Sequence record: NC_030884.1
Length of the DNA stretch: 32,995 bases
Direction: 5' to 3' (one strand)
This document shows positions 1 through 32,995 of this stretch, piece by piece (within the stretch, counting starts at the first letter, position 1; each line of letters begins with the position of its first letter). The notes beneath the pieces were generated by a model, which was given only the letters and a program-made list of their open reading frames with translations, searched no databases and was not told the DNA's origin. Both the position numbers and the translations under genes were made by a program.

Positions 1-86
1 AAAAAATGAAAAAAACTCCCATTTCCTTTTTACTACTCTACAATTATAAAACATTAAGAAGGTATTAGGAGTTTTTTTCATTTTTT
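1..86. other. Terminal imperfect palindrome / putative hairpin telomere
   Basis: 1..19 pairs perfectly with 68..86; inner 24 positions pair in register with 15 Watson-Crick pairs and 9 mismatches around a central AATT (42..45). Confidence 0.75.
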
Positions 87-127
87 GCGTAAATTTCGCA
101 ACTAATGAGATAAATTGGAAATTCCAA

Positions 128-160: not shown

Positions 161-544
161 AGTTAATAAATTGAAAATTCCTAAATTCCTAAATTCCAAT
201 TATTCTGTCATTTTGCGTAATTTTCAAAATAAAGTTAATAAATTGGAAGTTCCTAAATTCCAATTAATTCTACACCTTGTAAAAATATTCCAATAAGTTA
301 ACTAAATTGTAAATTCCTAAGTTCCTAAATTCCAATAAATTGTACACCTTGGAAATTTATTACAAAAAGTTAATAAAATTGAAAATTCCAAAATTCCAAT
401 TAATTGTTCACTTTGGAAAATTATTCCAATTAGTTATGTAAATTGGAAATTACAAAATTCCAAATATTCTATCATTTGTTGAAATTTATATTATAAAATT
501 GCTTAATTGTAAATTCCTAAATTCCAAATAATTATACATTTCCA
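161..544 (+). repeat. About six degenerate 50-72 bp tandem repeats built on AAATTCC(T/A); includes the rudiviral terminal motif AAATTCCTAAATTCCTAAATT (175..195)
   Basis: Units start near 161, 231, 295, 366, 431, 495 with AAGTTAA..AAATTG..AATTCC.AAATTCCAAT; the 21-mer is the complement of the AATTTAGGAATTTAGGAATTT motif recalled from rudivirus ends. Confidence 0.85.
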
Positions 545-5228: not shown

Positions 5229-6428
5229 CTATTTTGGTATGACATTTATTTTATTTCTTCTTAATAAGTATACTATAGATCCTATTATTGGTATTATTAT
5301 AATTCTTAATATTGTATCTTCTATATTTCCAGAGATTACAAATTTATAAAATATTGGATTTTGATATCCTAAGTAGAAGAATAGAAATATCTGAATTGCT
5401 AAAGATGTTAGAACTATAGAAAATAATTTTTTATCATTCATGAGTTTCAAATATGCAAATGCTACAATTATGAAATTCCAGAAGATGAACAATAAACCAT
5501 CAAGTCCAAAAGATATATTAAATCCAAGTAGATTTTCTAGAACATTTGCTATTGTTTCTGTCGCAAAAATCAATAATAAAATATTTGGATTTATTTTGCT
5601 AAATGTTTCAGGTAATACTTTATCGAAACTCATAGTTTGAATTAATCTACTTTGGATTTTATTTGCAATTGGCATGTAACTAAAGAACCAAATTGGCATT
5701 AATGCAAACAATATTGACAAATTTGAATAGCTATCTAGAATTGAAAGTATCACGACTACTAAATAGCTTACAAAATATCCGACCATACTAGATTTTTTAA
5801 TATTTTTTATTTCTCCAGCTATGTAACTGATTGCATTTATGAATATAAACGCTGATAAATCAAATAGTAATGCAGATAATAAAGTATTAGAAATTGTGAA
5901 GTTTTGATATTGAAAATTAAATGATTTAAAAACTATAAATAATGCTACTATTATTTGTGCAATTGCTAATATATCAACAATTTTTGCATATATTCTCTTA
6001 TTAGCGATAATTAGTAAAACAATAGGAAATAAAGATTCAACAATTAGAAATTGTTCAAATTGATTTTGAATATTAAAGTTTAAGAGTACAAGATCACCTA
6101 AGATTGGTTGAGATAGTACATATGTTAACCATAATGAAATTCCAAAAATTGTAAAGAATTTTGAAGAAAATGCAGTTCTAATATATGCATAATCACCGCC
6201 ATTAAGTGGATATTTTGTTGTTAAACGATAATACATTAATAATAGTGGAATTTCAAATACTGCTCCAATTAAAATTGCGTATAATAAGTTAACATTTTTT
6301 AGCAAACTACTGACAAATAATGGATAACTTATCCCGCTTAAAATTCCTATATAGAGAAGATTTATTGAAAAAATATCTAGGATATTAAATGATTTTACAA
6401 TTCCAGAACTTTTTCTTTCAAGTTCCAT
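5229..6428 (-). CDS. APC-superfamily (amino-acid permease-like) membrane transporter
   Basis: About 11-12 hydrophobic segments; YYRLTTKYPLNGGDYAYIRTAFS matches the APC loop motif (P..GGdYvY....f). Confidence 0.85.
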   Translation of the reverse strand: MELERKSSGIVKSFNILDIFSINLLYIGILSGISYPLFVSSLLKNVNLLYAILIGAVFEIPLLLMYYRLTTKYPLNGGDYAYIRTAFSSKFFTIFGISLWLTYVLSQPILGDLVLLNFNIQNQFEQFLIVESLFPIVLLIIANKRIYAKIVDILAIAQIIVALFIVFKSFNFQYQNFTISNTLLSALLFDLSAFIFINAISYIAGEIKNIKKSSMVGYFVSYLVVVILSILDSYSNLSILFALMPIWFFSYMPIANKIQSRLIQTMSFDKVLPETFSKINPNILLLIFATETIANVLENLLGFNISFGLDGLLFIFWNFIIVAFAYLKLMNDKKLFSIVLTSLAIQIFLFFYLGYQNPIFYKFVISGNIEDTILRIIIIPIIGSIVYLLRRNKINVIPK

Positions 6429-6664: not shown

Positions 6665-6835
6665 TTAACCGCCTCGTTTTTGCAAATACTCTCTTATTGC
6701 TTCTTCTATAGCTTGAGTTAATTGAAGATTATTTTTTGCACAGTATACTTTCAGTCTAGTTTTCAAATCCTTGTCCATATAAATTCCAAATACTGCTTTT
6801 TGCTTCTTTTTTTGACTCTGTTCTTGAGTTTGCAT
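6665..6835 (-). CDS. svtR: Ribbon-helix-helix repressor SvtR (56 aa from ATG 6835)
   Basis: MQTQEQSQKKKQKAVFGIYMDKDLKTRLKVYCAKNNLQLTQAIEEAIREYLQKRGG matches recalled SIRV1 ORF56b; RHH pattern. Confidence 0.9.
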   Translation of the reverse strand: MQTQEQSQKKKQKAVFGIYMDKDLKTRLKVYCAKNNLQLTQAIEEAIREYLQKRGG

Positions 6836-6859
6836 TTTTCCTCGTTTGTTCATTTTGAT

Positions 6860-6882
6860 TTATGACATTTTTATATCTTTTT
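6860..6882 (-). promoter_or_regulatory. GTC-type promoter of svtR, embedded in the rep 3' end
   Basis: AAAAAGATATAAAAATGTCATAA identical to 7665..7687 and 10093..10115. Confidence 0.75.
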
Positions 6883-7219
6883 TTGTCTTTATCATATATT
6901 TATATACATTTTTTATATCACTTATATTTTTTGGAATTAATTCGATTCTTATATCAGTATGAGGAGGCATATGTTTGTGAACTCTAGAATAATCCAGTTT
7001 TTTATTCGTGAAAACTAAAATATGATAATGAAGACCATTTGAATTTTTTGTGGTTTCCTTTATAGAAAATACATGTGAATTTTTGTCATGATTATAAATA
7101 TAACTACGAAATTTTTTAAAAATTTTTTCAGTATCTCCATATTTATAATTAGTTGCAATAGTAATGAAATAAGTATAAGTATAAGAAAAATGAAAATTTA
7201 AAACTTTTTTCAAATCCAC
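6860..7219 (-). CDS. rep: HUH-family Rep endonuclease (119 aa from GTG 7219)
   Basis: Motif 1 FITI, motif 2 LHYHIL, motif 3 YKYMIK; matches recalled SIRV ORF119; the 192-aa track call is an over-extension. Confidence 0.9.
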   Translation of the reverse strand: MDLKKVLNFHFSYTYTYFITIATNYKYGDTEKIFKKFRSYIYNHDKNSHVFSIKETTKNSNGLHYHILVFTNKKLDYSRVHKHMPPHTDIRIELIPKNISDIKNVYKYMIKTKKDIKMS

Positions 7220-8135: not shown

Positions 8136-9458
8136 ATGAATGAAACTACACAACAGAATCTTCAATTATTTGAAAAGTTAAAAAGTCATTCTTTTTTTTA
8201 TAATCCAAGAGATAATGAAAGAATTTTAAGTCTAATTCTTGGCGAAAAACAAGTTGAAGAAAATAAGAAAATTGAGATTTTGAAAGCTTACAAGAGAGGA
8301 ATTGATTCTCAATATTTTAGTGCTAATTTGCCATATTATAACGAAATAAAATTTATAAGTAAAATTACTGGATTTAAAGTTAAAGATGATCTAGTAATTG
8401 CAAAATTTCAAAATGGTTTTACTGGAGATTTTGATCCACATGAAATTGCTGATAATCCAGATGATTTTTATAATCTTATTTCTTCATATATGTTTGTAAA
8501 GATCAAAAAAGGATCAGAAAACTGGTTTATTGATGAAATATTTTCTATAGAACCGCCTAATAATTTTGAAATTGCAAAAGAAATTCTAGAAGAAGCTGAT
8601 AAACAACATTTAACTTATGCTATTCTATTGCAAGCTTTTGGATATGATTCACAAAAGATGGATTCAGATGATATTTTCTTAACTTTACCACGATTATTCC
8701 CACTTTTCAAATCTCCAATTACTAAAAGACAGATAAACACAATAGAAATTTCAAATAGAGGTACTGGAAAAACTACAACATTTATGATTTTACAAGAAGT
8801 TTTCAATTTTCGTTATTATACAGAACCTCCAACTTATGCAAATTTGATCTATGATGCTAGAAATAATATGTACGGTTCAGTATTTTTATCAAACGGATTA
8901 ATTTTTGACGAAATACAAACTTGGAAAGATGGATATGCAGTTAAAGAATTAAATTCTATAAATTCTACATTATCTACTGGAATTGAAAATTGCATTTGGA
9001 CAAGAGGAGCAGGTACAGAAAGTAAATCTGCTACAATTCAAAAATGTATTCCAATTATTTATGCTGGAAATCCTTTCTCTTTAACTTTAGATAAATATCA
9101 AACTCCAGATATAGAATCATATTTACAACAATATGAAATTTTTACGCCGGCAATTTTAGATAGAATTCATATTATTCAATTAGCAATTAAGAAAACTTAT
9201 GATAAAATAATAAATGCTAGAGTTCTTTATCCTTCAATTCTAAGAGCATTAGTGGAATTAATTCAGGAAAAAATTAACAGAACTACAAATTATGCGGACT
9301 GTGGAAATCTAGAAAGTAGAAGAAAAGAACAATCTATAGATATTCAAATACTTTTACAAGCTTTAGATATAGATTTGCAAATTGGAAAAGTTTCAAATGA
9401 AGAAGTATGTAATAAAATTGTAAATCTAATGAGATTTAGCAATTTAGGAGGATGGTGA
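8136..9458 (+). CDS. AAA+/P-loop ATPase (SIRV ORF436/440; annealing/helicase-like)
   Basis: Walker A SNRGTGKT, Walker B LIFDE, sensor AGNP, arginine-finger-like ILDRI. Confidence 0.88.
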
Positions 9459-15843: not shown

Positions 15844-16308
15844 ATGAATCCAAAATATGAAGTTGAAGAAGTAAAAAATAAAGAATTAATAAAATTAGTA
15901 AGAATGTTAATTGACTATTATCATATTCAGGGAATGGTAAAAGGCGGTGGAGCTGGAAGAAATAGTAGATATTTTATATATCTTCAAAAAGAAGAAGACA
16001 AGAAATATATTGTAGCAGTAGCTTGGTTACACGATAATACACCATTCCGTTTTATTGCACAACAATATAATATTCCAAACGACAGATCTTATTTTATTAG
16101 AAGAGTTACAAAAACTGCTCCAGGAGATCATTTAGTGAATTTTCTAAATGATTTATCTGAGAAATTGAAGAATGACGGTTTTGAAGTTCTATGGACTTTA
16201 GGACTACCAGATCATAGTAACGCTTTATACAAGAAAGCTGGATTTAAATTAGTAGGACAAACTAGTAGGACAAAACATGAAGTTTATGTAAAATATCTAA
16301 ATAAGTGA
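15844..16308 (+). CDS. GNAT-family acetyltransferase
   Basis: FIRRV..PG and NALYKKAGFKLVG (GNAT motif B-like). Confidence 0.8.
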   Translation: MNPKYEVEEVKNKELIKLVRMLIDYYHIQGMVKGGGAGRNSRYFIYLQKEEDKKYIVAVAWLHDNTPFRFIAQQYNIPNDRSYFIRRVTKTAPGDHLVNFLNDLSEKLKNDGFEVLWTLGLPDHSNALYKKAGFKLVGQTSRTKHEVYVKYLNK

Positions 16309-16680: not shown

Positions 16681-16840
16681 ATTGTATTTAGCTCTAGATG
16701 ATCTAACTATGGCTTTAGCAACAGAAGATAAAGAAGAAGTTAGAAAATCTGAAGTATTTCAAAAAGCTTTAGAAGTTGTAAAAGTTGTAAAAGAAATGAG
16801 AAGATTACAAGTTAAACCTGTTGAAGGTGAAGAAAAATGA
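16631..16840 (+). CDS. 69-aa helical hypothetical protein
   Basis: Own GTC promoter inside hjc (16594..16611); ATGA-coupled to acrIII-1. Confidence 0.75.
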
Positions 16841-17181
16841 ATAAAAATTATTTAGCAAATGCATTCTCAATAAATATGTTATCTAAATTTCCAATAAAAG
16901 TTACAATTGATAAAATTGACAGATTAGAATTTTGTACAAATATTGATAATGAAGAAATAATAAATGCAATTGGACATGATTCAACAGTTCAACTAATAAA
17001 TTCATTATGTGATACAAAATTTGAGAAAAATAGGATAGAAATTAAATTAGACAAAAGAGACAAACTATATATTGTGCAAATTTCACAAAGATTAGAAGAA
17101 GGAAAAATATTAACGCTAGAAGAAATATTGAAATTGTACGAAACTGGAAAAGTTCAATTTTTCGAGATAATTGTAGACTAA
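16837..17181 (+). CDS. acrIII-1: AcrIII-1 viral ring nuclease (DUF1874; degrades cA4)
   Basis: [17 protein letters not shown] (catalytic GH), [14 protein letters not shown] match recalled SIRV1 gp29. Confidence 0.95.
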
Positions 17182-17494
17182 TAAGTCAAATAAAATTTTT
17201 TTCATCTTTTTGGAATTACGCATTTGGGTTAACTCTTTTATGCTAAAATTTTTTAATATATAAATGTTTTTACGCCGTTATTTTGCGTAAATTATCGTTA
17301 GAAAAGTAAAAATTTGTGTGAGTTAAAAGTTTAAAAAGATTTCTTGTAAATTATCGACTCTCATTTATATACTTGTCATTACAATTTTTCAGCAGATGAA
17401 TGCAAAAAAGTAACAAACGAAAAATTGAAAGAACTTTTAGTTTTGTATTTTTTTAGTAATGTTTATAATTTTGAAAAGAAACAATTTAATCAAT

Positions 17495-20400
17495 ATGAGT
17501 TTTCTATTGAATTTAGGTGAGTTAGGAACATTCTTTGCAGATGAAATTGAAAATTTGGAAAATTTCACAAACTGGATATCTAGTGATTTTATAAATTTTA
17601 TTAATGCAATAGTTAATGATATCAAAAATATTACAAGTTTCCTAGGACAAGCAATTTCCGATATTCCTACTTTTATGACAAATATTGCAACTAATTTCTT
17701 AACAATTTTACAGAATTTTGTACAAACTGCAATTTCTACAATTCAAGGATTTGTTTCATGGTTTGAACAACAAGTTGTAGGAGCTTTTGAATTTCTATCC
17801 TCAATTGCGTCTGATTTCATAAATTCAGCATATTCATTTTTCCAAAATGTAGCTAACGCATTTGCACAAATTATATCAGGAGTAATTTCCGATTTTCTGA
17901 ACTTTTTCGGAGCTAATATGAAACATATTTCTAATGCAATTTCTCAACTTACTCAATTTTTATCACCATTTATTGCTCCAATTACAATTGGAAAATTCTT
18001 ACCAGTTATTGTAGATAAATTAGCTGAAATTTTACCAGAAATAGAAATAGATTTAGCTCCAGTTGGATTAGGCGGAAAAATTCCAATTAAATTTGGAGAA
18101 ATTATAAAAGCTTTTGCAGAAACTTCAGTAGATTTTTTAAATGAAATAAGAACTGAACTTGCTATAACTTTAAAAGAATTTATAAAAGAACCATTTATTT
18201 CAGATTTTAAAATTACAGCGAGAGAAATATTTAATGAAATTGGTTTGGGCGATTTGCCATTTGCAGATCCGCCATTTGTACAAATTGGAAGATGGGTAGC
18301 TGTAAGGTCTTTTGAAGAAATTAAAGATCACTTAAAAGAAACAATATTGCTAACTGGTTATCCAGCTTGGTTTACTAATGCTTATCTAGAACCTCCAGTT
18401 AATGATTTCGCTCCTAAAAATCCATTATTTAGACCTGTAGGAATTCGCGATCTAATCTTAGGGACACAATATGGAATTTTAAACATTTCAGATCTTGAAA
18501 AATATGCATATAACAATTTATTAACTCCAAAAACTGCAAAATTAATGTATCAAAACCAAACTGCTAGACTTTTACAAAGAACTGTAGAGCAAGGGATTCG
18601 ACAATTTATTATTACTCCTCAAAAAGCTTATGAAGAAATAATTCAAAATGTTAATTTAACTGGTAAAGAATTATTTCTAAAAACTTTCACATTAGAATAT
18701 GAATATGCAGTTCAGAGAATTGTTAGACAATTTTTAAGATCATTATTATCTAGAGCTTTATCAAATTTTGGAAGACCGTACCTTGATTTTAAATATTTAG
18801 ATGATACAATTGCTAAATTATTTAAAGATCTAGGATATCCAGAAGAAGTAAGAACAGTTTTCGATACTATGATCACACAATCTCAGTTAATTTATACTAA
18901 TCAACTTCTATTAAGACAATTACAACAAATCGTTAGGTTAGGAATTTTTGATCAGAAAAAGATTAAAGAAGAATTGAAAGCTAATAAATTTAATGAACAA
19001 ATAGCATTACAAATTTTAGAAAGTGAATTACAATTTGCACAATTGCAAAATATACTAAAAGAATATCAATTCAAACTTAAAAGTTTTCTAATTTCTCCAA
19101 GAGATTTAGAAAAAGATCTAAAACATATTGGATTTGATTCTGCAATTATTTCAGCTTTGATTTACGAAAATCAAACAGAACAACTTATAAAGTTTCAATT
19201 ATCAAATCTAGAAAGTTTAGCGAAAAAAGGCTATTTATCTTTAGATGAAATCAAAAAGCAATTTAAAGCAATTGGAATAATAAAAGAATATGAAGATGCA
19301 TTTATAAACTTTATAAATCAAGAATTACAAATATCTGCATTTTTGACAATTTTAAAGAGTCAATTAAGACAATTCCAAATAGATTCAAAAATTGCAGAAG
19401 TAGAATTGAAGAAATTGAATATTAATGAATATCTGCTAAATCAGATAATTCAAGAAGAATATAACATAAATATCGCAAAACTACAATTAAGCGTAATTGA
19501 AACAATTGCGAAAACTTTATACTATGATCAACAACAATTATCTGGAGAATTAGGAAAAATAGTAAAAGATAAAACAGCTCTTGATTTATATAATCAAAAG
19601 TTTTATTACGAATACATATATCCAAAAATTATTAATTATCATCTCCAATTGGCTAGACATGGAATTCTTTCAGATATTTCAAAATTACCAAAAGAAGTTA
19701 TAGAATATGAAATTAAGCCTGCATTATTGACTTATCAAACTACGCTAGAAATTGAGTATATAAAAGAATCATTAAAAGATTTGGAAATTAAGCCAGATAA
19801 CGCAATAAATGAACTAGAGAAATTAGGAATGCAGAAAGATATAGCTCAATTAATTGTAAATACTTATATTCCGACATTTTATAACGTACATACAATAATT
19901 CAAAATGTTATAGAAGGTCAATTATATAAAGTCGGGAAAGTTCCAATAAATCTAGGAAATGCAGAAAGTGAACTAAGAAAACTAGGAATTCCTGATAATC
20001 AAATAAAGATTCTTCTAGAACAATATGCTAGTACTTTTGGTCTTGAAATTTGGAGAAGACATTTGCCTTCAATTTCCATAATTGAAAATGCAATAAAGTA
20101 CAATTATCTAGATCAAAAATTAATAGAATATAGCTTTATCCCATCTGAATTATTGAATTTGTATGTAAACTATTATCAACATTTACTAGTAGCACAAGAA
20201 GTACAATCTTTCAAATCTGAATACATAACTGCATTAATTTATAATTATCAGAATTTACAATTTGAAAGTTTGTTAAAACAATATGGAATTAATGAAGCAT
20301 TATTAAATGTAATAAAATTATTTGCACAAGTAAGAAAAATTGTGACAGGCTTACAAGAACTATATCTAACGCCGACAAAAGCACTTTCAATTAGCGAATA

Positions 20401-20671
20401 TGTATCAAATCCACAACAATTACTACAGAAAGTATTTACAGAATTCCAGATTCCGCAAGAGTTACAAAATACATATTTTGAATATGCAAGAAATAGAAGA
20501 GTTAGCAGATATGTTAATGAAATAATTACTACAATTAGCTTACTATTTGAGAAACATAAAATAGATCTTAATACTGCACAATCTTATCTTCAACAATTGA
20601 AGAAATATGGATTAACTGATGAAGAAATTCAATTGATAACACTCAATTGGCAATTAAGAAGTGCTTACTAA
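17495..20671 (+). CDS. Terminal (tail) fibre protein, SIRV ORF1070 family; start 17459 or 17495
   Basis: Largest ORF, amphipathic N-terminus and helical repeats; size and position match the recalled fibre protein. Confidence 0.88.
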   Translation: MSFLLNLGELGTFFADEIENLENFTNWISSDFINFINAIVNDIKNITSFLGQAISDIPTFMTNIATNFLTILQNFVQTAISTIQGFVSWFEQQVVGAFEFLSSIASDFINSAYSFFQNVANAFAQIISGVISDFLNFFGANMKHISNAISQLTQFLSPFIAPITIGKFLPVIVDKLAEILPEIEIDLAPVGLGGKIPIKFGEIIKAFAETSVDFLNEIRTELAITLKEFIKEPFISDFKITAREIFNEIGLGDLPFADPPFVQIGRWVAVRSFEEIKDHLKETILLTGYPAWFTNAYLEPPVNDFAPKNPLFRPVGIRDLILGTQYGILNISDLEKYAYNNLLTPKTAKLMYQNQTARLLQRTVEQGIRQFIITPQKAYEEIIQNVNLTGKELFLKTFTLEYEYAVQRIVRQFLRSLLSRALSNFGRPYLDFKYLDDTIAKLFKDLGYPEEVRTVFDTMITQSQLIYTNQLLLRQLQQIVRLGIFDQKKIKEELKANKFNEQIALQILESELQFAQLQNILKEYQFKLKSFLISPRDLEKDLKHIGFDSAIISALIYENQTEQLIKFQLSNLESLAKKGYLSLDEIKKQFKAIGIIKEYEDAFINFINQELQISAFLTILKSQLRQFQIDSKIAEVELKKLNINEYLLNQIIQEEYNINIAKLQLSVIETIAKTLYYDQQQLSGELGKIVKDKTALDLYNQKFYYEYIYPKIINYHLQLARHGILSDISKLPKEVIEYEIKPALLTYQTTLEIEYIKESLKDLEIKPDNAINELEKLGMQKDIAQLIVNTYIPTFYNVHTIIQNVIEGQLYKVGKVPINLGNAESELRKLGIPDNQIKILLEQYASTFGLEIWRRHLPSISIIENAIKYNYLDQKLIEYSFIPSELLNLYVNYYQHLLVAQEVQSFKSEYITALIYNYQNLQFESLLKQYGINEALLNVIKLFAQVRKIVTGLQELYLTPTKALSISEYVSNPQQLLQKVFTEFQIPQELQNTYFEYARNRRVSRYVNEIITTISLLFEKHKIDLNTAQSYLQQLKKYGLTDEEIQLITLNWQLRSAY

Positions 20672-22514: not shown

Positions 22515-24464
22515 ATGTCTTCTAATCTAGTTACTACTAGTTCATCAACTCAATCATTAACTCAATCATCAAATCAATATTCATATCCAATATCAACTTG
22601 TTATCCAATTACTTCATTTAGTAAATTACTGAATAAAATAGCGAAACAATCTTTAATTTCTTCACAACTTTGGAATGAAATAGTTCAAGATCTTTATACT
22701 GCATACTCAGTTTACAAATATATAAATACTTCATTTCAATATCTATTACAATATCAATTTTCATATGGAAATATATATACTCTTTATGATTTATTTAAAG
22801 ATATGTATTTTTATATTTCAAATTTAAAGCCATATCCATTTATTCCATTAATTCAAGCTAGACCTGGACTGCCTTTAACTATAGAATATATGAATAATTT
22901 AATAAAAGCAATTATAAAATTAGCAAATGAAAATAATATAGCATTAGCAAAATCTTTAAACTTTGTTCAGCCTAATGAAATTGTTAAATCTAGAAAATTT
23001 AACGATATCATATACACAGTTAAACAATTCCTAACTTTTGATTTTAATACTTATTTTCTATTAGATTGTTATGGTTCAATATTCAGTAATTTAGTAAATT
23101 CAAAATCGGCATTTTTAAATGTATTAATTTATAATCTTCAATATCCTATTAATGCTAATAATACATATATCAAAAATTTGATTATATATCAATTAGATAA
23201 TACTATATATCTTAATGGTTATTCAATTATTAATGATTTTCTAATTGGAACAAATAATGGAACTATTGTTTTAAATGATAACGCAATTATAGAAAATTTA
23301 ATATGTAGACAAAATTATGGAGAAATATTGATAAATGGAAATGCAATTATAATAAATAATAAATGTTTTACAGCATTATTTTCAACTACACTTCAACAAA
23401 CACTTCCAGATTCCATTTCCTTAAATGCTAGATACTTCTTACCTCCGAATAAAATAGTATTTCAATTAACTCCAGGAAGCACAGGTGATTACGCAGTATT
23501 AATAAATCCAGATGGTTCTGTTTCTGTATTACCTGATAATACTACGATAAATTCCAATACAGATTACAGTAATATAACCGGTTATTCTACGGTACCTGGT
23601 CTTATTGCATTTGGAGGCGGAGAAGAAGCTTATAATCCTTGGTCTCCATGTGCGGAACCATGTTCACCATATGTCGCATTTTACAATACTTCAACTCAAC
23701 AATTGTCAATTTTCAAAATTCCTGGTGGAAGTTGTGATAATATGAATACTTCATCAATTGTTAAAGGTAATAGTAATGATATAATAGCAATAGGTGGCGC
23801 TAACCCAGGATCTTTAACTGGTGGAACTGGATATGTAATTTTTAACTCATCATTATCACCATATTTATATGGAACATTTGCACTTACAGATTCAGCTGGT
23901 AATTCGTTATATTTATATAGAATGCCCAAAATAACTGTTGGAAACAATCTTTATTTAATAGCTGGAATTAATAATTCTAATACTATTGCAATAGAATATG
24001 TTCCATTACAACTTCTATATACCAACGGGCATAGTTATGCTAATGTATTATGTAACAGTGAAACTATAACTCCAAATTATATAACAACTATTACAAATGA
24101 TTTTAACTATGAAGGAATATTATCTATATATACAGACGGTACAAATATTTATTTTGTATATTATTCAACTAATGGATATGTAAAATTAGTAATATTTGAC
24201 ACATTCACGAATACTGTCATATCTATTAAACAATTAATTCAATTATCAAATAATAGTTCAACTTTTACTATCGCTAACGGATACGTATATGTATCCGTAC
24301 AACAAACGAATTCATTTACTGTATATAAATTTGATTTAAATGGAAATTTAATAACATCAAAAAGTTTTACAGGAACTGGATTTATAGATATGAATGGATA
24401 TATAGTACAGTTTACAAATGGACTAAATGCAGGTTCTAAAATTTTAGTTTATCCGCCGTTCTAA
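22515..24464 (+). CDS. 649-aa probable virion/receptor-binding protein (helical N-terminus, beta-helix-like repeats, beta-rich C-terminus)
   Basis: Operonic with the upstream structural gene; Asn/Ser/Thr/Tyr-rich with many N-x-S/T sequons. Confidence 0.7.
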   Translation: MSSNLVTTSSSTQSLTQSSNQYSYPISTCYPITSFSKLLNKIAKQSLISSQLWNEIVQDLYTAYSVYKYINTSFQYLLQYQFSYGNIYTLYDLFKDMYFYISNLKPYPFIPLIQARPGLPLTIEYMNNLIKAIIKLANENNIALAKSLNFVQPNEIVKSRKFNDIIYTVKQFLTFDFNTYFLLDCYGSIFSNLVNSKSAFLNVLIYNLQYPINANNTYIKNLIIYQLDNTIYLNGYSIINDFLIGTNNGTIVLNDNAIIENLICRQNYGEILINGNAIIINNKCFTALFSTTLQQTLPDSISLNARYFLPPNKIVFQLTPGSTGDYAVLINPDGSVSVLPDNTTINSNTDYSNITGYSTVPGLIAFGGGEEAYNPWSPCAEPCSPYVAFYNTSTQQLSIFKIPGGSCDNMNTSSIVKGNSNDIIAIGGANPGSLTGGTGYVIFNSSLSPYLYGTFALTDSAGNSLYLYRMPKITVGNNLYLIAGINNSNTIAIEYVPLQLLYTNGHSYANVLCNSETITPNYITTITNDFNYEGILSIYTDGTNIYFVYYSTNGYVKLVIFDTFTNTVISIKQLIQLSNNSSTFTIANGYVYVSVQQTNSFTVYKFDLNGNLITSKSFTGTGFIDMNGYIVQFTNGLNAGSKILVYPPF

Positions 24465-31878: not shown

Positions 31879-32995
31879 GACTTTCAATAAGAAGTTTCCA
31901 ATTTTTATCATCGCTGCATATATAAATTGAAGGTTCCAATTTTTCTATCTCCAATTTTTTAAAAAAGGCCACTTTTTATTCCTAGCATGAAACAAATTGA
32001 TTACGAGCGGTGAAAAAGTCTAAAAGAATCTATTTTGAACTGAAGAATAATTATATAATTAATAACTACTATCTAGCTAATTAGCTAATATATATAATAT
32101 ACTAATTAACTAATTAGCATAATATACAAATATATAAATATTAAGATATTACGATTGTAATAATATTAATATATATAAAAAAATAATAAAAAAAAGAAGG
32201 ATAGTCCTCACTAACATAATTAAATGCCTTCTGCTAGTATTTAAACTTTTCTCTCTAAACTTCCAATTTCCTCCATTGCAAACGCAAAAAATTGAAGCAT
32301 AAATTACTAATTGCAAACTAAAAATTTGGAAATTATATAATATATTATAATATACGAATATGTTTAGTATATTTATAATTTTCAGCCGTAAAAGTTTTGG
32401 TTTCTCCTAATTATTAATTAATAATTTAATAGCTCCTAATATATATATATCTGGAAATGTATAATTATTTGGAATTTAGGAATTTACAATTAAGCAATTT
32501 TATAATATAAATTTCAACAAATGATAGAATATTTGGAATTTTGTAATTTCCAATTTACATAACTAATTGGAATAATTTTCCAAAGTGAACAATTAATTGG
32601 AATTTTGGAATTTTCAATTTTATTAACTTTTTGTAATAAATTTCCAAGGTGTACAATTTATTGGAATTTAGGAACTTAGGAATTTACAATTTAGTTAACT
32701 TATTGGAATATTTTTACAAGGTGTAGAATTAATTGGAATTTAGGAACTTCCAATTTATTAACTTTATTTTGAAAATTACGCAAAATGACAGAATAATTGG
32801 AATTTAGGAATTTAGGAATTTTCAATTTATTAACTTTGGTGCGAAAAAAACGAAAAAAACGAAAAAAATTGGAATTTCCAATTTATCTCATTAGTTGCGA
32901 AATTTACGCAAAAAATGAAAAAAACTCCTAATACCTTCTTAATGTTTTATAATTGTAGAGTAGTAAAAAGGAAATGGGAGTTTTTTTCATTTTTT
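31860..32995. repeat. Right inverted terminal repeat (1136 bp)
   Basis: Reverse complement of 1..1136; contains AATTTAGGAATTTAGGAATTT at 32801..32821. Confidence 0.95.

Follow-up and report, generated by a model that had tools for sequence, protein, structure and literature searches.

A palindrome, TTACGC-N9-GCGTAA (17270-17290), precedes the fibre gene of Sulfolobus islandicus rod-shaped virus 3 (SIRV3) and is tied to the fibre promoter in two genera of rudiviruses; its arms are kept while its spacer drifts, and it stands at the distance from the TATA box that has been published for the orthologous promoter. Very probably, judging from the sequence comparisons described here, the palindrome is a transcription-factor operator in the extended region upstream of the fibre promoter of the S. 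islandicus rudiviruses. On balance, we favor the view that it is the distal high-affinity site of SvtR, a viral repressor of the ribbon-helix-helix (RHH) type, which is gp10 in SIRV3; the identity of the binder, which we infer from distance and conservation, and the spreading mechanism discussed below, are the inferred parts of this proposal. The palindrome also resembles a stretch close to the genome ends, a resemblance that looks largely coincidental. Probably, then, this is an ordinary operator-type element, the SvtR site already footprinted in SIRV1.

The window, i.e., the whole stretch of DNA that was analysed, is the complete SIRV3 genome of 32,995 bp (NC_030884 / KX712143). The palindrome lies in a gap between gp28 (DUF1874, 16837-17181) and gp29, the homologue of ORF1070 of SIRV1 and SIRV2, which is a terminal-fibre or minor structural protein. 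The initial annotation of this DNA had described a non-coding gap of about 280 nt with a GTC promoter ahead of the fibre gene. The gap is 277 nt long (17182-17458), the promoter is present (TATA at 17364-71 and GTC at 17375-77), and all letters and coordinates given at that time were correct when rechecked on SIRV3. The annotated start of gp29 at 17459 is probably wrong and the protein 12 residues shorter, because the Yellowstone SIRVs have non-coding AACATT and no ATG opposite the SIRV3 ATG at 17459, and the homologues of every rudivirus genus align with residue 1 as read from the ATG at 17495. The gene is therefore listed as follows:

17495-20671, plus strand: fibre gene gp29, start corrected (17459 in the annotation).

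The DUF1874 gene, which is gp28 in SIRV3 and stands between the ORF69-like and fibre genes in the Icelandic viruses, is missing from the Yellowstone SIRVs. The Yellowstone SIRVs without this gene still retain the entire upstream regulatory block.

The palindrome itself consists of three parts, to which no strand is assigned:

17270-17275: left arm, TTACGC (extended form TTTTTACGC, 17267-75), 95% column identity in 11 rudiviruses.
17276-17284: spacer, CGTTATTTT, 9 nt, 79% column identity.
17285-17290: right arm, GCGTAA, within the 13-mer at 17281-93, 97% column identity.

In SIRV3 the symmetry extends to TTTACGC-N9-GCGTAAA at 17269-91 (TTTACGC at 17269-75, the 9-nt spacer and GCGTAAA at 17285-91), exactly as first reported. 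TTACGC-N9-GCGTAA is identical in SIRV1, SIRV1-XX, SIRV2 and SIRV3, within a 56-nt near-invariant block. The more distant comparison was made with a Yellowstone set of eight SIRVs, which belong to the genus Usarudivirus and share about 73-75% identity in this region, plus one IMG/VR contig. The CGTAA of the right arm is invariant in 11 of the 11 sequences, with ACGTAA in SIRV4 and SIRV11 only, and the left arm varies to TTACGT (V60) and to TTACAC (SIRV9 and SIRV10), so that four arm pairs are seen: TTACGC/GCGTAA, TTACGC/ACGTAA, TTACGT/GCGTAA and TTACAC/GCGTAA. The spacer has five different sequences among the relatives and a constant length of 9 nt. In the alignment the arms have 96% column identity, compared to 79% for the spacer and 86% for the alignable gap as a whole. 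Arms that are kept around a drifting spacer are the pattern expected of a dimeric protein-binding site, and we regard this as suggestive, not overwhelming, because other blocks of the gap (17329-51, 17376-87 and 17423-34) are conserved at least as well as the palindrome. Twelve of 225 gap windows are as conserved as the palindrome, and eight of 225 show as strong a contrast between arms and spacer, which places it in the top 4%.

Within SIRV3 alone, a palindrome with 7-nt arms is not above chance: six with at least three G/C in the arm and a spacer of up to 15 nt were found, compared to 5.0 expected. One could accordingly suppose that the palindrome has no sequence-specific function, that the upstream region is constrained in a general way, and that both the symmetry and the match to the inverted terminal repeat (ITR) arose by chance. 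The expected frequency would agree with this, as would the ease with which 13-mers are shared with the ITR (see below) and the several gap blocks that are equally or more conserved, with the gap mean already at 86%. However, the arms survive about 25% divergence while the spacer has changed five times at a fixed length, the contrast between the two is matched at few gap positions, and the arm variants TTACGT, TTACAC and ACGTAA are all transitions that keep the YG/CR core. We consider the absence of a specific function distinctly unlikely. The check for conservation suggested at the outset came out positive, the palindrome being retained in relatives of two genera, and it is this conservation, not single-genome statistics, that on present comparisons makes the palindrome real.

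Its association with the fibre gene is constant. SIRV1, SIRV2 and SIRV3 each contain a single copy of the palindrome in relaxed form, always before the fibre gene, with its centre 84 nt before the TATA and GTC promoter and at a constant position relative to the gene. No such palindrome is present upstream of the fibre gene in SSRV1, MRV1, ARV2, SBRV1, SRV and ARV1, which represent four other genera and have much shorter fibre-gene upstream regions of 35-239 nt. A palindrome scan of IMG/VR gave 107 matches, two of them rudiviral and the remainder due to chance.

The motif was also counted over the genome. TGCGTAA is found seven times compared to 1.55 expected, an excess that is inflated since four of the seven are two ITR copies and their mirror images. 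The shorter GCGTAA is over-represented 3.5- to 4.5-fold in SIRV1, SIRV2 and SIRV3 (15-19 copies compared to about four in dinucleotide shuffles); most of these copies are at conserved coding positions, and several are at the same offsets in orthologous genes. In another side observation, assemblies labelled Colwellia asteriadis, Streptomyces gamaensis, Planomonospora alba and Paenochrobactrum glaciei contain 100% matches to SIRV gp16, and the Planomonospora contig of 31,951 bp also holds the identical palindrome. This looks like contamination of bacterial assemblies by rudivirus DNA.

The gap contains several other elements that bear on the function of the palindrome:

17364-17379, plus strand: distal fibre promoter, TATA box TTTATATA (17364-71) and GTCAT (17375-79), conserved in all SIRVs.
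17339-17356, plus strand: second copy, ATTTCTTGTAAATTATCG, of a direct repeat whose first copy (17280-97) overlaps the right arm; 83% identity, 59-nt spacing.
17329-17351, plus strand: most conserved block of the gap, GTTTAAAAAGATTTCTTGTAAAT, with BRE-like AAAAAG; 97-100% column identity.
17257-17264, no strand assigned: TATA-like octamer TATATAAA, 5 nt left of the palindrome; T.TATAAA invariant in 11 sequences.

The promoter at 17364-79 matches the TATA-N-GTCAT type found before gp10, gp12, gp15 and gp26. Standard SIRV3 promoters read AAAAAGATATAAAAATGTCAT and are located 22-43 nt before their start codons; the fibre promoter is 93 nt before the annotated ATG at 17459 and 131 nt before the ATG at 17495. 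Thus, the fibre mRNA seems to have a conserved and unusually long leader, probably of about 100 nt. In other rudivirus genera, too, a TATA-like element stands some 100 nt ahead of the fibre ATG. In SIRV3 the leader region (17380-17494) includes AATTGAAAGAAC at 17423-34, a T7 run at 17448-54 and a TATA-like octamer at 17462-69, 33 nt before the ATG. SIRV9, SIRV10 and one contig (L092) have about 84 nt inserted in the fibre leader. The second copy of the 18-nt direct repeat ends 7 nt before the TATA box, and GTAAWWTWWCG is present in all relatives.

Contigs of four RNA runs span the gap unbroken, although assembled contigs of this kind carry no information on transcription start sites, nicks or depth. 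In addition, four RNA-seq runs, each from a different study, yielded contigs in which two viral stretches, 15924-15953 and 18398-18435, are joined to the Sulfolobus CRISPR repeat CTTTCAATTCTATAGTAGATTAGC. Therefore, gp26 and, with one mismatch, the fibre gene are targeted by spacers of the hosts in these runs.

The case for SvtR starts from work on SIRV1, summarized in a review (PMC5569661). SvtR has four sites on the SIRV1 genome, with the highest affinity for the promoter of gp30 (ORF1070), and it represses this promoter in vitro, in agreement with the initial annotation, in which SvtR was named as a repressor of the fibre gene. The high-affinity site is located about 80 nt upstream of TATA/BRE on the gp30 promoter, and polymerisation has been proposed to proceed from this distal site towards the promoter (PMC5569661). 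The centre of the SIRV3 palindrome, 17280, is 84 nt upstream of the first position of the TATA box (17364), and its right arm ends 73 nt upstream, an agreement that assumes that 17364-71 corresponds to the promoter meant by the authors, since the TATA-like octamer at 17462-69 would put -80 elsewhere. At -80 ± 15 of the SIRV3 fibre promoter the palindrome is the sole conserved item.

SIRV3 encodes the repressor as well:

6665-6853, minus strand: svtR homologue gp10 (annotated as an Arc-like repressor / 'transcriptional regulator SvtR'), candidate binder.

The gp10 protein is 95-98% identical to SvtR of SIRV1 and SIRV2 over the RHH domain. Homologues of svtR are present in all Ice- and Usarudivirus genomes, that is, in the genera that have the palindrome, and none was found in SSRV1, MRV1, SBRV1, SRV, ARV1-3 or SMRV1. 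Six of these svtR-less rudiviruses were examined upstream of the fibre gene, and they are also without the palindrome and without the long upstream region; this phyletic co-occurrence counts as approximately one evolutionary event. SIFV, an independent lineage that encodes an SvtR homologue, has no such palindrome, which is formally a point against SvtR but is uninformative. Of the two functions initially offered for the site, a replication site or an operator, the operator is the better supported, both by the distance in the review and by the shared distribution of palindrome and svtR, with SvtR itself as the favored binder.

The SvtR operator of SIRV1 (Guilliere et al. 2009, via PMC5569661) therefore provides the closest comparison: the promoter is that of the orthologous gene, the palindrome is 100% identical in SIRV1 and SIRV3, and the published and observed distances to the TATA box agree (about 80 and 84 nt). 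The difference is that the quoted consensus is unlike the palindrome; we equate the two sites by distance and conservation. The SvtR consensus of the review, ATnnTTCAAnAnnnnnAAAATG, is not matched by the palindrome and has at least four mismatches anywhere in the gp30 upstream region of SIRV1 and SIRV3. Scans of SIRV1, SIRV2 and SIRV3 with this consensus produced no significant match in the gap and counts equal to those in shuffled sequences. The consensus is, however, a weak criterion for the palindrome because it fits perfectly only the promoter of svtR itself in SIRV1, with a 4-nt spacer, and that site is unconserved in SIRV2 and SIRV3. The SIRV1 own-promoter site, ATAATTCAAAATCTTAAAATG, is located just after GTCAT, and its lack of conservation in SIRV2 and SIRV3 contrasts with proteins that are 95-98% identical (the comparison covered SIRV3 6854-6900 and the SIRV1/2 stretches 5569-5600 and 8989-9020). 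The SvtR promoter contains no GCGTAA, and the other papers citing SvtR give no site sequence. An alternative SvtR-like site near the transcription start, ATTTTTCAACA in SIRV1, was rejected; it is unconserved even in SIRV2 and SIRV3.

The arms of most RHH operators are spaced 7-11 bp apart, and those of NikR about 16 bp. In SIRV3 the distance between the arm centres is 15 bp, which is longer than usual for RHH operators and speaks against SvtR, although NikR-type spacing is similar. The palindrome is similar to the sites of RHH proteins that spread along DNA (AvtR of AFV6 and the bacterial Arc, CopG, MetJ and NikR types) in that a small palindromic or repeated site lies away from the core promoter. 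Closer to the TATA box there is another, related repeat, which is consistent with the cooperative spreading described for SvtR and AvtR (PMC5569661). If SvtR is the binder, its dimers would occupy both arms of the palindrome early in infection; cooperative spreading would then carry SvtR downstream over the second GTAAATTATCG repeat, in the direction of the BRE/TATA at 17364-71. According to this model, which is that of the review, spreading would delay transcription of the fibre gene until late.

Another possibility is that the palindrome is an operator or a core element of a second promoter and not an SvtR site. The octamer at 17257-64, where T.TATAAA is invariant in 11 genomes, could be a candidate second promoter, either upstream or divergent, and 17257-66 is the exact reverse complement of 17362-71. 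If this promoter were directed rightwards, the palindrome would cover about -18 to +5, which is a classical position for a repressor. If it were directed leftwards, the promoter would be divergent, with a BRE overlapped by the left arm (minus-strand sequence GCGTAAAAA) and with an RNA product antisense to the gene upstream; on the minus strand of SIRV11, AAAAAG precedes ATTTATAAA, and this is near the standard SIRV promoter AAAAAGATATAAAA. The mismatch between the palindrome and the published SvtR consensus also favors such a promoter. However, the TATA at 17257-64 has no GTC, its BRE is poor on the plus strand and acceptable on the minus strand only, and the minus strand has no ORF. Binders could include the CopG-like gp16, the C2H2 zinc-finger protein gp20, the product of an unannotated tandem-RHH gene or a host factor. 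The motif of aCcr1/gp21, AGTATTA, differs from the palindrome. The palindrome is absent from four Sulfolobales MAGs, none of them S. islandicus, an absence that carries no weight either way for a host factor. Overall, a second promoter is possible but doubtful, and SvtR remains the binder that we prefer.

Among host factors, Sta1 can be compared directly. The available part of PMC1635249 describes sites for Sta1, a host wHTH activator, on SIRV1 promoters 134 and 56; these are imperfect palindromes, one in the core promoter and one about 30 nt upstream, and that part of the paper reports no Sta1 data for the 1070 promoter. The stretch ATTTTGCGTAAATTAT (17280-95) formally fits ATNT-N8-WNAT. It was rejected as a Sta1 site, since the pattern consists of six A/T-only positions and a chance match is expected every few hundred bases in SIRV3.

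The resemblance to the genome ends was what first drew attention to the palindrome. SIRV3 has a perfect ITR of 1,136 bp, and three items enter the comparison:

83-95, plus strand: subterminal ITR copy of TTTTGCGTAAATT, 40-52 bp from the hairpin tip; mirror copy at 32901-32913.
211-223, plus strand: second ITR copy with one mismatch, TTTTGCGTAATTT; mirror copy at 32773-32785.
17214-17222, no strand assigned: 'third half-site' AATTACGCA; 72% column identity, compared to a gap mean of 86%.

The string at 17281-17293, TTTTGCGTAAATT, is indeed equal to ITR 83-95 and to its mirror copy at 32901-32913, and the 13/13 identity between promoter and ITR holds in SIRV1, SIRV2 and SIRV3. SIRV2 has a mutated form of the second ITR copy (TTTTTCGTAATTT), and the Yellowstone ITRs have none. 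The ITR block around 83-95 is deeply conserved, yet all eight Yellowstone genomes read TTCTGCGAAAATT there, with GCGAAA, and their promoter copies read TTTTGCGTAAAAT or TTTTACGTAATTT, with CGTAA kept. As a result, ITR-promoter identity is 9-10/13 in the Yellowstone genomes compared to 13/13 in the Icelandic clade. There is no ITR-promoter co-variation, because the ITR changed at the T of CGTAA that is invariant in the promoters. The third half-site is, as had been claimed, the reverse complement of ITR 214-222; it is unconserved even in SIRV1 and SIRV2, where its counterparts are GTTTGTTAG and GATTACACA, respectively, and it is probably a chance match.

Within SIRV3 alone, a 13-mer shared with the ITR is not above chance. 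The ITR and the unique region have 55 exact 13-mers in common compared to 27 in Markov-2 simulations; for those with at least three G/C the numbers are 12 and 4.8, and at least one such 13-mer occurs in 96% of the simulations. A 13-mer shared by the terminal 300 nt and this particular gap has a P of about 0.03, although this restriction was made post hoc. Most simply, the 13/13 identity, which is confined to the Icelandic clade, reflects chance and a shared AT-rich context.

The ITR copy had also been placed next to a hairpin stem, and this stem is an artefact. The SIRV3 record reads through the tip at 43/44, and the 'stem' ends at the start of the record: positions 1-43 are an imperfect complement of 44-86, with mismatches confined to the 23 nt nearest the centre. 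The SIRV11 record (1-538) extends further and is palindromic for 269 nt about the tip, with 97% complementarity running straight across the motif; its tip mismatches are found only in the terminal 22-23 nt. Since both records continue across the covalently closed tip, the ITR motif is in ordinary duplex, 40-52 bp from the tip.

These results bear on the suggestion that the palindrome is an internal origin, a Rep nick site or a termination site that shares a factor with the subterminal ITR motif. The nearest known system is the rudivirus terminal origin with its HUH protein Rep (Oke et al. 2011, via PMC5062984 and a 2021 preprint), and the likeness is the 13-nt string that the site and the subterminal ITR of the Icelandic clade have in common. 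Rep-dependent initiation occurs at the termini (PMC5062984), and Rep nicking has been reported at the hairpin terminus; compared by position, the shared string is 40-52 bp from the tip and is not the reported nick region. The identity of the string in SIRV1, SIRV2 and SIRV3, the post-hoc P value and the deep conservation of the ITR block that contains the motif would favor such a function, as would the coverage of SIRV2, in which two Rep-independent peaks "around gp26 and gp39" led the 2021 preprint to propose internal origins. However, these peaks are at least 3.5 kb from the motif; the SIRV2 palindrome (20262-20282) is upstream of gp38, in the gp37/gp38 gap, and gp39 starts at 23785, 3.5 kb away. 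The identity is lost in the sister genus, where all eight ITRs have GCGAAA while the promoter arms keep CGTAA, and the second ITR copy carries changes in SIRV2 and is missing in the US clade. The site was noted to lie about 800 bp from the genome midpoint, which is true of SIRV3 (+0.78 kb), but the central position is not conserved (+0.65 kb in SIRV1 and +2.5 kb in SIRV2), so the offset from the midpoint shifts by kilobases whereas that from the fibre gene is constant. The cumulative GC skew of SIRV3 has no switch at 17.3 kb, and its broad maximum at about 19-20 kb tracks gene orientation. Folded as single-stranded DNA, the palindrome has little stability (-5.2 kcal/mol at 37 °C, z = -1.2), and the case for a cruciform is weak as well. 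With the ITR match restricted to Icelandic viruses and no skew switch at 17.3 kb, a site for the telomere-binding factor is unsupported, and we consider a replication function extremely improbable.

A related idea would combine the two functions. In the Icelandic rudiviruses a single factor, either SvtR or a telomere-binding protein, might act on both the ITR block and the palindrome and so couple replication or resolution of the genome ends to late-gene switching; alternatively, the palindrome might aid the Rep-independent initiation hinted at in SIRV2. Both proposals are speculative and quite improbable. A loose parallel to the shared-factor idea exists in the poxviruses, where the telomere resolution element doubles as a late promoter.

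In conclusion, the resemblance between terminus and centre should not serve as evidence for an internal origin in rudiviruses, and the 'hairpin stem' in several deposited SIRV records arises because the sequence continues past the covalently closed end. Should the palindrome be the distal SvtR operator, it would add little beyond the work on SIRV1, and the consensus quoted in the literature would fail to describe the fibre-promoter site. What would be gained is a definition of the operator that holds across genera, TTACGY and RCGTAA arms around a spacer fixed at 9 nt, and, for work with the SIRV2 genetic system, a clean site to mutate.
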